The notes below the pieces were generated by a model, which was not told the DNA's origin, made no database searches, and saw only the letters and a list, made by a program, of their open reading frames with translations. Shown in pieces: positions 3,365 to 56,924 of a DNA stretch of 64,000 bases. The number at the start of each line of letters is the position of its first letter. The first letter of the stretch is position 1. Source of the DNA: Chrysemys picta bellii (lineage: Eukaryota); contig NC_088803.1 in NCBI RefSeq assembly GCF_011386835.1, forward strand, positions 186,001 through 250,000, given 5' to 3'. Made by a program: the position numbers and the translations under genes.

Positions 3365-3653
3365 GTGTGATGGCCCAGACCACTGTGCACCAGCTGGAGG
3401 GGCCGGTCACTGCCAAGGAAGGGGATGCCTTCCAGATCAATTGCACATACCAAACTGCCAACTTCTACGGCTTGGCCTGGTACCAGCAGTGGGAGGGAAA
3501 AGCCCCAGGCCTGGTCTCATACCAGGTAGCAGCTGGTCAGGAGGAGTATGGGCGATTCACTGCTTTCCTCAGCACCGCTGGGAAATACAGCCTCCTTCAC
3601 CTCAAGGAGACCTGGGTCTCAGACGCTGCCTCCTACCTGTGTGCTGTGAGAGA
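3365..3653 (+). CDS. TRAV1: TRAV1-like T-cell receptor alpha V exon (open frame; leader not located nearby)
   Basis: Acceptor ttgttccag ends at 3364 (phase 1). The exon encodes (G)VMAQTTVHQLEGPVTAKEGDAFQINCTYQTANFYGLAWYQQWEGKAPGLVSYQVAAGQEEYGRFTAFLSTAGKYSLLHLKETWVSDAASYLCAVRD. Hand alignment to human TRAV1-2 as recalled gives 49/81 identities with no gaps from TAxEG to CAVR. Confidence 0.85.
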
Positions 3654-3692
3654 CACACTGACTCCAGGGGCTTCCTGAGCTGTGCAGTATCT
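3654..3692 (+). promoter_or_regulatory. V recombination signal sequence (23-bp spacer), weak nonamer
   Basis: Heptamer CACACTG at 3654-3660, 23-bp spacer, nonamer GCAGTATCT at 3684-3692. Confidence 0.7.
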
Positions 3693-4329
3693 GGAGCAGG
3701 TGTGTGTATGGTGGGGGAATGGGCTCCTCAGATCTCCCCTACTGCCGAGAGCAGTTATCTCATGCTGCTGGGAACAGTGCAGAGGTTACTGGATTCAGGC
3801 CCCTCCTCCGCCATAGACTTCCCGGGTGATCTTGGGCCAGCACTTGGCCTCAGTTCCCATCTCTCCAAAGGGGAAAACAGCCCTGCCCTTCCTCCCGGGG
3901 GGAGAGAGGGCTGGAAGGATCAATATGTGAAAGATTGGGCAGTGCTTTGAGATCGCCCAAAGCGCTATATGCGAGAGAGACGGTGGTGTTATTAATGACT
4001 ACTTGCAAAGGAATAGAAGGGCTGCCACTCCCAGCAATCATCTCGCTCAGTCTCATGCCTATGACAGCGGCTGGCACCAGCTGCTTCCGAGGAAGGTGTA
4101 AGATCCTGTGAATTTCCCCCTGTGAATGTTTCCTCCTGACCTCTAGTAGTCAGAGAGGGGCTCAAGCCCTGGAGCATGAGGTTGAATGTCCCTACCAATG
4201 TTTTCTGTCACAATTAAAACTCTGGCTATTCCAGTGAGAGCCTTACAGAGCTCAGTGTGTTTGGCGTATTGGAAAGGAGACTGAGAGGACCCTTCATCAC
4301 ATTGTAGAAGTATTTTCATGGGAAGCAAA

Positions 4330-4640
4330 CATCGGCTGCTAATGGGCCATTCAAGCTAGTGGAGAAAGTCAGAACAAGAACCATGGGCTGGAAGTTGAAG
4401 TACACAAGAATTAAGCACAGATTTCTAACACAAGGGCAATTAACCATAGGAATAAACTTTCAAGGGGAGGGGTGAATTCTCCAGCTCTTGAGGCCTTCCG
4501 ATCAAGGCCAGATGCCTTTGAACATTCTTGTTCTCCTTCCTGGAAGATACTTTAATCCAGCACCATTTATTGGGCTCAGGGCAAGTGGATGAAATTCTCT
4601 GGCGTGTGTCAGACAGCAGGTCAAACTAGCGCGAATGGTC
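4330..4640 (+). mobile_element. CR1 3'-end fragment (old)
   Basis: Decayed AGAACAAGAA...TGGAAGTTG...TTTCTAAC...GGTGAATTCTCC tract resembling the 3' ends of the better-preserved CR1 copies in this window. Boundaries are approximate. Confidence 0.55.
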
Positions 4641-5050
4641 CCTCCTGGCTTTCAGACCCCTGGGAGTTGGAAGTGTTAACACCAGGACTGGAGGTACCCC
4701 TGGGGATCTGAAGTGTGGTCCCCAGAAGTCGTCCAGCTGTGACTCACCCACCACCGAATACTCTCCCTTCTCCATCCAGAGACTGGGATCCTCCAAACAG
4801 CCTAAGGGAATTGGGAGCTGGGTGCCTGAAGCTTTTGCAAACCTGAGCCACAAACACCTCCTATGGTAACTCCCTGGTACACGTTTGACCAGTGTGCAAT
4901 GTTCAGACAGGCTGCTGGGGGGCACTAAAGGCAGGTTTCAAACCAGCCCTTCTATGCGTTTTGTAGGAGAAGGGAGAGAGTCCTGGCTGTTCAGAGCTGA
5001 AAACCTGCTGAGAGCAGAGAGCTGGGGGCTTTCTCTGTCTCTTCAATGCA

Positions 5051-6459
5051 ATGATCTCCTTGGATGGTGTCCTGGTTTTCTCCCTCTGCATCTCAGGTGG
5101 GTTTGTGGGGAAATTGCTGCCAATCATTCCTGTTAGGTGAGCTGCTCATGGTCGATACGTAGCTATGGAGGGTGAAGAGTTGTGAAAGCAGATGGCAGTT
5201 CTTTAATTTCAAATGGGATCTAGCAACTGAGATGAAGCTAGCTAGACAAATTCAAGCTGGATATAAAGGGCCAATTTAGAACAGGGAGGGTGATTCGCTA
5301 TTGGAACAACTTTTCTTGGGGACTTGCTGGTGTCTCCATCGCTTGGGCTCTTTCTAAAAGCTCAGCTGTAGCTCACTCTCTGTGCAGAAATCCCAGGAGA
5401 AAGGCTCTGGCCTGGGTTATACAGGGGATCGCCATGTTCCTAGTGATCCTTTGTGGCCTTTACATCTCTGAATTGTCAAACCAGGGGCCAAAATGTCGTT
5501 TGTTTTCCTAGAAATCTGTTTAAAAAGCAAAGAAAGATTCAATTAGAAATGTTTATATAGTAAAACAGCAAGCAACCACCTGCCAAAAACCAACCCCCAA
5601 ACCCCAGCCAAACAACCCCCCGCCCCCCAACAAACCCAAACTAATCAACCAACAAAATGCCTGGAAAAAATGAAAAGTGAAAAATTTTCAGTTTGTGCTT
5701 TTTTGGCAGAAACCCCCCCAATGGGGCAGTGTGACTGTGGGGAGAGCGCCGGAGTGTAGGACCCAGTCTGCCCGCTGGGTGAGCTTTGGCAAGGCCTCTC
5801 TGGGCCTCATTTCCCCACCTGTAAAATGACCTTCTTTGTCAAGCTTTTTGAGATTGATGCATGAAAAACACTGTGTTAGAGCCAGGGGTTGTTAGAGGGA
5901 CAGGGGAAGTCTCTTATTCTGTCAAAAAGCCACTTTCTGTAGGAAAAAAAGTTTCAAGAGACTTTTTTCGAGCTGCCAGATGTGAAACAGGTGCTTCAGC
6001 AGCAGTGTGACTGGGAGATTTCGGCCTGCCAGGGAGAGGGGAATTTGGGGGGCAGGAGGGGAAGGCTACTGGAAGTGGGATAGGGATGTGCTCTCAGGGC
6101 CAACAGCTCTGTACCACCCTTCTCTCTTTTGCAGCCCCACTGGCCAGAGCCCAGCAAGGGGGTAAGGATACGGTGACCCAGCCTCCTGCCACGCTGATGT
6201 CGTCTGAAGGGGAGAATGTCACCTTACCTTGCAGCTTCACGTCCATCTCCTCCACCCCCACTGTCGCTTGGTACCGGCAGCGCCTGTTGCATTCCCTGGA
6301 GTATTTGATTCGTGGAGACTCCCTGGGATTTACCGACAGGGCGAATGAGGAGGAGACGCGCCTGCATCTCTGGGTGCATAAGCAGCAAGGAGCAGCTCCT
6401 CTGAATATCTCTGCAGCCCGGGTCTCAGACTCCGCTCTGTTCTTCTGTGTGCTGAGTCC
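5051..6459 (+). CDS. TCR alpha/delta V gene, apparently functional (leader exon 5051-5096, V exon 6135-6459)
   Basis: Leader MISLDGVLVFSLCIS-G with GTGGGT donor at 5097; acceptor ctctcttttgcag ends at 6134 (phase 1). The V reads APLARAQQGGKDTVTQPPATLMSSEGENVTLPCSFTSISSTPTVAWYRQRLLHSLEYLIRGDSLGFTDRANEEETRLHLWVHKQQGAAPLNISAARVSDSALFFCVLS with Cys23, Trp41 and Cys104 intact. The leader-to-V pairing is inferred. Confidence 0.8.
5150..5475 (+). mobile_element. CR1 3'-end fragment inside the V leader intron
   Basis: GAAGCTAGCTAGACAAATTCAAGCTGGA...GGTGATTCGCTATTGGAACAAC tract, homologous to the CR1 end at about 16.1-16.4 kb. Confidence 0.55.
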
Positions 6460-55564: not shown

Positions 55565-55759
55565 GGGTGGGCGGGCTCTGGATCTGTGCCTGCACTGAAT
55601 AGTCAGAGAGAACAAAGAGACGGGGGAGAGAGCGAGACACAGACAGATGATAGAGCCAGCCTGTGAGAGAGATAATAGAGACAGACAGATATTAGAGATG
55701 GGCAGTTACCATGTATTAGAAATACACCTTTTATCCTAGTGTAGACAGCCCCTCGGGGT

Positions 55760-56260
55760 ATATGTGTGTGTGGAGTCTTTGTGTGTACCCTCTGAGTTGT
55801 GTGAGCATGTACCGTCTGTGTTGTGTGGGCCTGTCTGTGTTGTGTGGGCATGTGTACCGTCTGCGTTGTGTGTCCGTGTCTGTGTTGTGTGAGCGTGTAC
55901 CATCTGTGTTGTGTGTGCATGTCTGCGTTGTGTGTCCGTGTCTCTGTTGTGTGAGCATGTGTACTCTCTGCATGATGTGAGCATGTGTACTGTCTGTGTT
56001 GTGTGTGCGTGTCTGTGTTGTGTGTGTGTGTGTACCATCTGTGTTGTGTGCGTGTTTCTGTGTTGTGTGAGGGTGTACCATCTGTGTTGTGTGCGTGTTT
56101 CTGTGTTGTGTGAGGGTGTACCGTCTGCATTGTGTGTGAGCGTGTACTGTCTGTGTTCTGTGGGTGTGTCTGTGTTGTGTGAGCGTGTACCATCTGTGTT
56201 GTCTGGGTGTGTATACTGTCTGCATTGTGTGGGCATGTGGTTTGCATGGGTGTGAAACAG
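55760..56260. repeat. TG-rich compound minisatellite (units of about 16-32 bp, e.g. GTGTACCATCTGTGTTGTGTG)
   Basis: Directly visible. It explains the spurious Thr/His-rich and Cys/Val-rich ORFs here. Confidence 0.9.
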
Positions 56261-56444
56261 GAAGGTTGATCGTTGTGTCAAAGGGGCTGGCTGGCAGGTG
56301 TCAGAGGGAGACAGTGACACACAGTCCCATTGATAGAGATGTGCAGATGGAGGCAAGGAAAATGAGTAAGGGGGGCGGGTGTGGAGACAGAGAGGTTTGA
56401 TCCTAAAGGTTGTGGGAGAAGGCAACTGAAGTTTTCGTCCCACT

Positions 56445-56885
56445 ATGAGGACACTCTCAATTCTGCTTTCCATCCTTGGTGAGTGGGATTTTCCAGCTAT
56501 TTCCCTGTGTTTCCAGCCTGTATTTGAAGGTTGAGTTTCCCAGGCGGTGGCCGGTTCTTCCTCTCTCACTTCTTGGCTCTCTTCCCGCAGTGGCTCCGAG
56601 ATGGGCCCTGGCCCAGGTTTTCCAGCTGCCCCAGATCACACGAGTGGAAGGAGAAAGGATCTTGATCCCATGCAGCCAAAACGCCACCTCCCATGACATG
56701 ATGTCTTGGTACAAACAGCCCCAGCAGGGCCGGGGGGCGCCGAGCTTTCTAGGGACTGGGCATGACGGCTCCTCCACCGCTGGAGAATTCACCATGGCTG
56801 TGCACAAGGCCTCCCGCTCCACCAACCTCACCCGAGATGGAGCCAGCCTGAGCGACGCCGGCATCTACTACTGCGCAGTGAGAGA
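56445..56885 (+). CDS. TRAV gene, TRAV2/4/26-like, apparently functional (leader 56445-56478, V exon 56591-56885)
   Basis: Leader MRTLSILLSIL-G with GTGAGT donor and a 112-bp intron. The V reads VAPRWALAQVFQLPQITRVEGERILIPCSQNATSHDMMSWYKQ...SLSDAGIYYCAVRD. Confidence 0.9.
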
Positions 56886-56924
56886 CACAGCGAGGGGAAT
56901 CCAGGAGCCAGCTGCACAGAAACC
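56886..56924 (+). promoter_or_regulatory. V RSS (23-bp spacer), near consensus
   Basis: CACAGCG at 56886-56892, 23 bp, ACAGAAACC at 56916-56924. Confidence 0.9.

Follow-up and report, generated by a model that had tools for sequence, protein, structure and literature searches.

The question raised by the locus described here is whether the olfactory receptor (OR) genes of the OR4E subfamily, which in mammals lie among the variable (V) segments of the T cell receptor (TCR) alpha/delta locus (TRA/TRD), have kept their neighbours, order and strands in a reptile. The stretch of DNA that we analysed, called the window throughout, comprises 64,000 nt (bases 186,001-250,000) of a 55,647,867-bp chromosome record of the painted turtle Chrysemys picta bellii, on which it was placed by exact-sequence look-up of the window proteins; it contains no runs of N. 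An earlier reading of the letters (the original prediction) had proposed that the order and orientation of the mammalian TRAV1/OR4E cluster appear preserved in it. We find it very probable that what the window contains is the V-distal and near-terminal end of TRA/TRD in this turtle, where an old OR4E block is located among TRAV-type V segments and the core of this block was inherited from the amniote ancestor. The part of the proposal that holds is the tail-to-tail pair of OR4E2(+) and an OR4E1-type gene(-) among V segments, which is present in every amniote lineage sampled; a one-to-one match of the two minus-strand ORs to mouse MOR10 and MOR28 and the assignment of the QVFQ V to TRAV2 are not supported, and two V exons intervene between the TRAV1-like V and OR4E2.

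The OR4E genes and their order in amniotes

The ORF (open reading frame) listing and Pfam scans revealed four intact ORs in the window, and three of them make up the block:

17814-18749, plus strand: OR-A, intact 7tm_4 ORF of 311 aa, OR4E2 orthologue
22719-23654, minus strand: OR-B, intact 7tm_4 ORF, OR4E1-type gene of a reptile-wide lineage
45868-46812 (coding), minus strand: OR-C, intact 7tm_4 ORF, OR4E1-type gene; the public gene model reaches to about 48615 via a 5' exon

The usual rule of OR nomenclature, at least 60% protein identity within a subfamily, places all three genes in OR4E. OR-A is 95% identical to its closest turtle relative (Mauremys), 76% to the alligator protein, 71-79% to those of squamates and 71-75% to mammalian OR4E2/Olfr1509, the tuatara being unlisted for this gene. 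The corresponding values for OR-C are 98% (Terrapene, the closest turtle), 85% (alligator), 81-86% (squamates), 79% (tuatara) and 71-77% (mammalian OR4E1), and OR-B shares 68-70% with OR4E1 of horse and deer mouse. The three genes are under purifying selection, with dN/dS (the ratio of nonsynonymous to synonymous substitution rates) of 0.11-0.27 in pairwise Nei-Gojobori comparisons with alligator, Lacerta, Emydura, horse and deer mouse.

The affiliation of the three genes was examined in a maximum-likelihood tree, the careful run of which had 73 rows: the window ORs, 60 named relatives, two ORs from fetched loci and outgroups, which were taken from a search of 50%-identity representatives and bear the cluster look-up names OR4S2, 4X1, 4P4, 4N2 and 4D1. 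The OR4E clade (support 98/90) is separate from the 4S, 4X, 4P, 4N and 4D outgroups and contains OR-A, OR-B and OR-C, so the outcome that would have undone the original assignment to OR4E, namely ORs falling outside this clade, did not occur. An OR4N2-like gene is present on the same chromosome 14.7 Mb off, which says little. Within OR4E, the OR4E2 clade (100/97) is made of mammals (100/99) and reptiles (95/90), with OR-A among the turtles; its reptile part separates turtles plus alligator from squamates, and the clade mirrors the species tree with a single copy per species. By this sequence evidence, OR-A and OR4E2 (mouse Olfr1509/MOR83) are one-to-one orthologues. The OR4E1-type clade (100/98) consists of three groups: reptile B with OR-B (100/99), reptile C with OR-C (100/97) and mammalian OR4E1 (100/99). 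Since the reptile B and C groups each hold turtles, alligator, squamates and tuatara, the duplication that separated them predates the split of lizards from turtles and crocodiles. OR-B represents a reptile-wide lineage of the OR4E1 type, of which a mammalian member was not found. No bird sequences were present in the best 120 matches of either the OR-A or the OR-C search, though mammals were, and OR4E may have been lost in birds.

The DNA around the orthologues was fetched and searched with the turtle proteins. The arrangements recovered are given below, with spacings between neighbouring genes:

Painted turtle: OR-A(+), OR-B(-) 4.0 kb on, OR-C(-) 22 kb on
Emydura (side-necked turtle): V0, V3, V2b, OR4E2(+), OR-B(-)
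Alligator sinensis: V, V2-family V(+), OR4E2(+), OR-B(-) 3.3 kb on
Alligator mississippiensis: OR-B(-), OR-C(-) 6.7 kb on, V2-family V(+) 9.5 kb further, then another V, in the same orientation
Lacerta agilis (record coordinates): OR4E2(+), OR-B(-) 6.4 kb, OR-C(-) 6.6 kb, V2-family V(+) 8.5 kb
Horse: OR4E2(+), OR4E1(-) 8 kb on
Deer mouse: OR4E2(+), OR4E1-like(-) 3.4 kb, OR4E1-like(-) 23 kb

The order OR4E2(+)/OR4E1-type(-) thus recurs in the side-necked turtle, two alligators, the lacertid lizard, the horse and the deer mouse. In published maps, OR4E2 is located between TRAV1-2 and TRAV2 in human, Olfr1509, Olfr1508 and Olfr1507 between TRAV1 and TRAV2 in mouse, and TRAV1 among ORs in sheep (PMC4574546), while the TRAV1 segments of opossum, mouse and human are orthologous and interspersed with ORs, a synteny that was not seen in chicken (PMC2275272). 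The presence of ORs at the V-distal end of TCR alpha/delta was described as conserved synteny in tetrapods at the coarse level of "several OR genes" (PMC3457774, PMC12529555). Because the sampled loci and the published mammalian maps agree, the tail-to-tail pair of OR4E2 and an OR4E1-type gene among V segments is taken to be an ancestral feature of amniotes.

The second minus-strand OR has a different history. The original prediction had treated OR-B and OR-C as counterparts of mouse MOR10 and MOR28, so that the turtle plus/minus/minus arrangement would correspond one-to-one to MOR83, MOR10 and MOR28. The layout itself invites such a correspondence, for the spacings in deer mouse (3.4 kb and 23 kb) resemble those in turtle (4.0 kb and 22 kb) and the strands are the same. 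The tree, however, contradicts it: the sampled rodent OR4E1-type sequences are nested in the mammalian OR4E1 clade, whereas OR-B and OR-C fall into two distinct clades that span the reptiles, with orthologues of either gene in alligator, squamates and tuatara. The two OR4E1-like genes of deer mouse share 91% identity and form a recent pair, while turtle OR-B and OR-C, at 72%, form an ancient one; in addition, the horse region has one OR4E1 gene within 10 kb. A one-to-one correspondence of the three genes is therefore extremely improbable, and the plus/minus/minus layout with its similar spacing must have arisen twice. In the scenario that we favor, the amniote ancestor would have possessed OR4E2 and an OR4E1-type gene placed tail to tail as the core of the block, the second OR4E1-type gene of reptiles (OR-B) would have appeared by duplication before the lizard versus turtle/crocodile split, and a second gene would have appeared in rodents independently, at a much later time.

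V segments around the block

The full list of V elements was obtained by reading the DNA and by searching the window with its own V exons. With a fourth OR and the recombination signal sequences (RSS; heptamer, spacer length and nonamer where given), it is as follows:

2727-3005, plus strand: V0, TRAV/TRDV-type V pseudogene with an in-frame TAG at 2898-2900; no RSS recognisable
3365-3653 (exon), RSS to 3692, plus strand: V1, TRAV1-like V, Pfam V-set
6135-6459 (exon), RSS to 6498, plus strand: V3, open V exon, Pfam V-set (E 5e-9), RSS CACAGCC-23-GCGAGAACC
8896-9190, RSS to 9229, plus strand: V2b, near-copy of V2, RSS CACAGCG-23-ACAGAAACC
55291-55392, plus strand: fragment of a V0/V3-like V segment, found in the search with the window's own V exons
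56446-56479 (leader), intron, 56591-56885 (V exon), RSS to 56924, plus strand: V2, RSS CACAGCG-23-ACAGAAACC
59762-60679, plus strand: OR-D, intact ORF of a family-10 OR (OR10D-like), just past 56924

All V elements are located on the plus strand, and those that have an RSS all show a 23-nt spacer. V1, V3, V2b and V2 each combine this orientation with a heptamer, the 23-nt spacer and a nonamer, as is expected at the V-distal end of TRA/TRD. The five elements originally listed (a TRAV1-like V, three ORs and a V starting with QVFQ) are real and were assigned to the correct places and strands, as judged by ORFs, Pfam and DNA reading; as an inventory the list was incomplete, for V0, V3, V2b, the V fragment and OR-D were missing from it. 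OR-D is named OR10D3-like or Olfr958-like in other turtle records and is 73% identical to "OR10D4" of Pelodiscus; atlas look-ups were too coarse for its subfamily.

V1 is the segment for which a mammalian counterpart can be named. The best 27 matches of V1 in the PDB are all human TRAV1-2 or mouse TRAV1 chains (82-95 bits), and the next family, TRAV12, scores 72 bits. In a comparison of V1 with all reviewed human TRAVs (predicted structures), the first two ranks went to TRAV1-1 and TRAV1-2 with 53-54% identity, the next one having 40%, so that the TRAV1 subgroup is closest to V1 by a clear margin; the cluster names from atlas look-ups for V1 and V2 agree with the fold searches. Both this sequence similarity and its place upstream of OR4E2 support the TRAV1 orthology of V1 that the prediction had put forward. 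In the order listed by the prediction, OR4E2 comes next after the TRAV1-like V; in turtle, V3 and V2b intervene between the two, unlike in the published mammalian maps (PMC4574546, PMC2275272).

It is possible that V1 is not a working gene. An acceptor site and an open exon are present, and the RSS has the heptamer CACACTG and a 23-nt spacer, but a leader exon with ATG was not found in the 365 nt upstream and the nonamer is poor (4/9 positions matching). The orthologue of V1 in sea turtles is a pseudogene that has lost one nucleotide and carries a TAG in complementarity-determining region 1 as well as a TGA in the GRF motif (5934-6229 of the three loci L006-L008), and V1 is absent between V0 and V3 in Emydura (L009 1117-1978). 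The doubt about V1 arises from these observations taken together: the missing leader, the poor nonamer, the decay in sea turtles and the absence in Emydura. Alignment of public contigs to 3000-8999 gave one suggestive 260-nt contig with the same species label, the last 190 letters of which match 3364-3553 and break exactly at the predicted acceptor of V1; this is the pattern expected of a spliced transcript, the type of the run (RNA or DNA) being guessed and the first 69 letters being unplaced.

V2 is apparently a functional TRAV-type V, judging by its gene structure, but it shows no specific affinity to TRAV2, with which the prediction had compared its QVFQ start. Among human TRAVs, its best match is TRAV4 (28%), with TRAV2 at rank 28 (26% identity); PDB searches with the sequence or with a five-species profile pointed to no specific TRAV family, and the one protein recovered with V2 in a homology search is from a sea turtle, which gives no link to named TRAVs. 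Moreover, a copy of V2 with 94% protein identity, V2b, is located on the other side of the OR block. At the nucleotide level the two are 95.8% identical over 383 nt (8865-9247 versus 56560-56942), and the duplicated stretch begins 30 nt before the acceptor and does not include the V2 leader. In the two alligators, the positional counterparts of V2 and V2b share only about 60% protein identity, and the much higher identity in turtle points to gene conversion or to a second, recent duplication in the turtle line.

In Alligator sinensis, Emydura and sea turtles, a positional counterpart of V2b is located upstream of OR4E2, and the sea-turtle one (P0492) is annotated with its own leader. On the opposite side, a V2-family V follows OR-C at 8.5-9.8 kb in turtle, Alligator mississippiensis and Lacerta, always in the same orientation. 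As for the position of V2 as the first V after an OR4E1-type gene, in turtle the V fragment precedes it and its close copy lies upstream of OR4E2. Since V2-family segments are found on either side of the block in turtle and, when the two alligators are combined, in these as well, the reptile-wide feature should be described as "V2-family V adjoining the block" and not as "TRAV2 after the block". The remaining segments are shared less widely: V3 has orthologues in sea turtles (79% identical) and in Emydura and a 34% match at the same relative position in alligator, and orthologous copies of V0 are present in sea turtles and Emydura. The V segments that surround the OR block turn over, and the flanking V family common to turtle, alligator and lizard could not be paired with mammalian TRAV2.

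Several repeats were noticed in the window. A GC-rich tandem array (6506-7969; period about 93 or 284, about 5 long copies) directly follows the RSS of V3, and its unit holds a string resembling the spacer end and nonamer, CCCAGGGCGAGAACCTCC, so part of the RSS flank seems to have been amplified there; the long minus-strand ORFs of the array are repeat artefacts. A TG-rich tandem repeat (55779-56138; periods 43, 88 and 178) is located just upstream of the V2 leader and produces spurious long ORFs on both strands. Remains of the LINE (long interspersed nuclear element) type, with reverse-transcriptase domains and a zinc-knuckle ORF1, occupy 6-704 (-), 27345-28133 (-) and 35559-41045 (+), and LINE-type remains fill the greater part of the 22 kb that separate OR-B from OR-C. 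In the painted turtle and in sea turtles, this TCR alpha/delta end lies at most about 0.2 Mb from the end of the assembled chromosome (the sea-turtle locus L006 occupies 43,025,975-43,046,876 of 43,227,178).

Noncoding DNA and the persistence of the block

The intergenic DNA is mostly unalignable, even between turtle and alligator, and two conserved features stand out from it:

12653-12684, plus strand: conserved noncoding island, O/E-like site beside a homeodomain site
50995-51164, no strand assigned: block alignable to DNA upstream of the alligator OR-C gene model

The island is located 5.1 kb upstream of the OR-A start codon, and in it the O/E-like site TCCCTGGTGA is directly next to the homeodomain site TTTAATTAGG. 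Thirty of its 32 bases are identical to positions 7606-7637 of the alligator locus L001, in surroundings that cannot be aligned, and its 21-base core has one mismatch in Emydura; a search of 10 kb in Lacerta, horse and deer mouse did not recover it. Judging by these motifs, the island is a candidate promoter or enhancer of OR4E2. The 50995-51164 block is 68% identical over 171 nt to alligator L003 9826-9989, with which it is collinear and which is located just upstream of the OR-C gene model of alligator, and the block may be an alternative promoter or first exon of OR-C; it was not found near the sampled lizard or mammalian genes. A second short block, 53013-53059, matches L003 8126-8172. Other candidates were discarded: the recurrent noncoding matches (11.2 kb, 31.1 kb and 61.3 kb) belong to an interspersed repeat and were rejected as conserved elements, and the sole noncoding match between turtle and mammal is a (GATA)n microsatellite, so that no such alignment with the sampled mammalian loci survived inspection.

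In mouse, the MOR28 cluster is controlled by the H element, which is located about 75 kb from MOR28. Nishizumi's work of 2007 is said to have found that deletion of core H leaves three proximal ORs without expression, reportedly MOR28, MOR10 and MOR83. The prediction had named a shared long-range enhancer as an example of the strong constraint that the retained order would imply. One long-range olfactory enhancer common to the OR4E genes is possible, and it could be proposed that the block has been kept since the amniote ancestor by a single shared H-like "Greek island" enhancer with O/E and homeodomain sites, so that a break anywhere would switch the genes off. An O/E motif placed beside a homeodomain motif is indeed a hallmark of OR promoters and enhancers (PMC12547500), and such an element, with near-identical sequence in alligator and in two suborders of turtles, is located upstream of OR4E2. 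This element, however, is short, close to one gene and more promoter-like, its absence from the searched neighbourhoods in lizard and mammals does not suit an ancestral enhancer, and neither does the lack of turtle-mammal noncoding alignment beyond the microsatellite. A spaced O/E-homeodomain pattern gave no match, and the 13-base H/P motif (PMC6744719) gave 8 loose matches versus 1.6 expected, which are scattered and weak, none of them convincing. We consider a shared enhancer of this kind unlikely as the force that kept the block. It is equally doubtful that the OR4E genes and the flanking V segments are held together by olfactory cis-regulation of amniote-ancestral age, in which case the island upstream of OR4E2 would belong to a control system of the H type and rank with the oldest OR regulatory elements known.

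At the other extreme, three small genes within 30 kb could have stayed together by chance in slow genomes, their arrangement being unconstrained. The spacing is indeed free to vary (6.6 kb separate OR-B from OR-C in Lacerta, versus 22 kb, inflated by LINEs, in turtle), the V segments around the block come and go, and the intergenic DNA of turtle and alligator has diverged as described above. Nevertheless, the same order and orientation are found in at least six lineages across the amniote tree, the fast-evolving rodents and squamates included, and the coding sequences are clearly constrained. OR repertoires generally turn over fast by gene birth and death, which makes the retention of the OR4E genes unusual. 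Passive persistence therefore seems to us improbable, if less so than a shared ancestral enhancer.

The reading that we prefer, an inherited block within the TRA/TRD locus, would explain persistence mainly by the position of the genes together with selection that acts on each receptor and on the promoter near it. The ORs sit between V segments which are bound to stay on the same DNA molecule as the joining (J) and constant (C) segments, and because the flanking V segments must remain linked to J and C, breaks within the block would be costly, or they may simply be rare where rearrangement rates are low.

Several considerations weigh against this reading. The J and C segments, METTL3 and SALL2 (expected on the outer side) and DAD1 (expected on the inner side, with TRAJ and TRAC) fall outside the window, and only 186 kb of the record lie to its left. 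The best tree pairs reptile C with mammalian OR4E1 (96/73), and a duplication within reptiles (a B+C clade) is not rejected by the approximately unbiased (AU) test (AU p = 0.12). Inversions in the TCR locus are tolerable, since V segments can join by inversion, and so linkage in cis alone would not account for the orientation being conserved. Rearrangement and mutation are slow in turtles and crocodilians, and part of the conservation could be inertia. The reason for the persistence of the block is, finally, one that we infer.

Relation to known loci and implications

The turtle locus resembles the 5' end of human and mouse TRA/TRD (IMGT; PMC4574546, PMC2275272) in that a TRAV1-type V is located upstream of OR4E2, OR4E2 and an OR4E1-type gene are placed tail to tail, more V segments follow and the conserved ORs are intact. 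It differs in that a V pseudogene and two additional V exons are present on that side of OR4E2 where TRAV1 lies, in that the OR4E1-type genes include an ancient second one, OR-B, whose mammalian member was not found, and in that the V after the block is not recognisable as TRAV2. A family-10 OR is present in both turtle and human, but in turtle (OR-D) it lies beyond V2, whereas human OR10G2 is located on the TRAV1 side of OR4E2, flanked by TRAV1-1 and TRAV1-2. With the mouse MOR28 cluster and its H element, the turtle block shares three OR4E genes in plus/minus/minus orientation, similar spacing and O/E and homeodomain motifs near the genes; the second minus-strand gene is of independent origin in each lineage, and a counterpart of H was not identified. 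Earlier reports of tetrapod synteny likewise linked ORs to the V-distal end, at the level of "several OR genes"; no account of the reptile OR4E orthologues, their orientation, the OR-B lineage or the independent rodent duplication was found in searchable papers. The result is an extension of the known mammalian synteny, with corrections; it overturns nothing and describes no new kind of system.

Here, within an antigen-receptor locus, a small set of ORs has remained orthologous throughout the amniote tree, its place and orientation being retained. The OR4E block can therefore serve as a fixed landmark for aligning the fast-changing TCR V arrays of reptiles and mammals. The same three-gene layout, having arisen twice, in reptiles and in rodents, offers comparable loci and a natural test bed for the regulation of OR genes. 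The position of V1 also supports an old origin of TRAV1, which bears on the time when T cells of the mucosal-associated invariant T (MAIT) type could have arisen. A review mentions that turtles are reported to possess an MR1-like gene (PMC12562908). On the reading of amniote-ancestral cis-regulation, which we called doubtful above, a TRAV1-type V would also have stood beside OR4E2 before the split of mammals and reptiles, earlier than MR1, which TRAV1 serves in mammals, is thought to exist.

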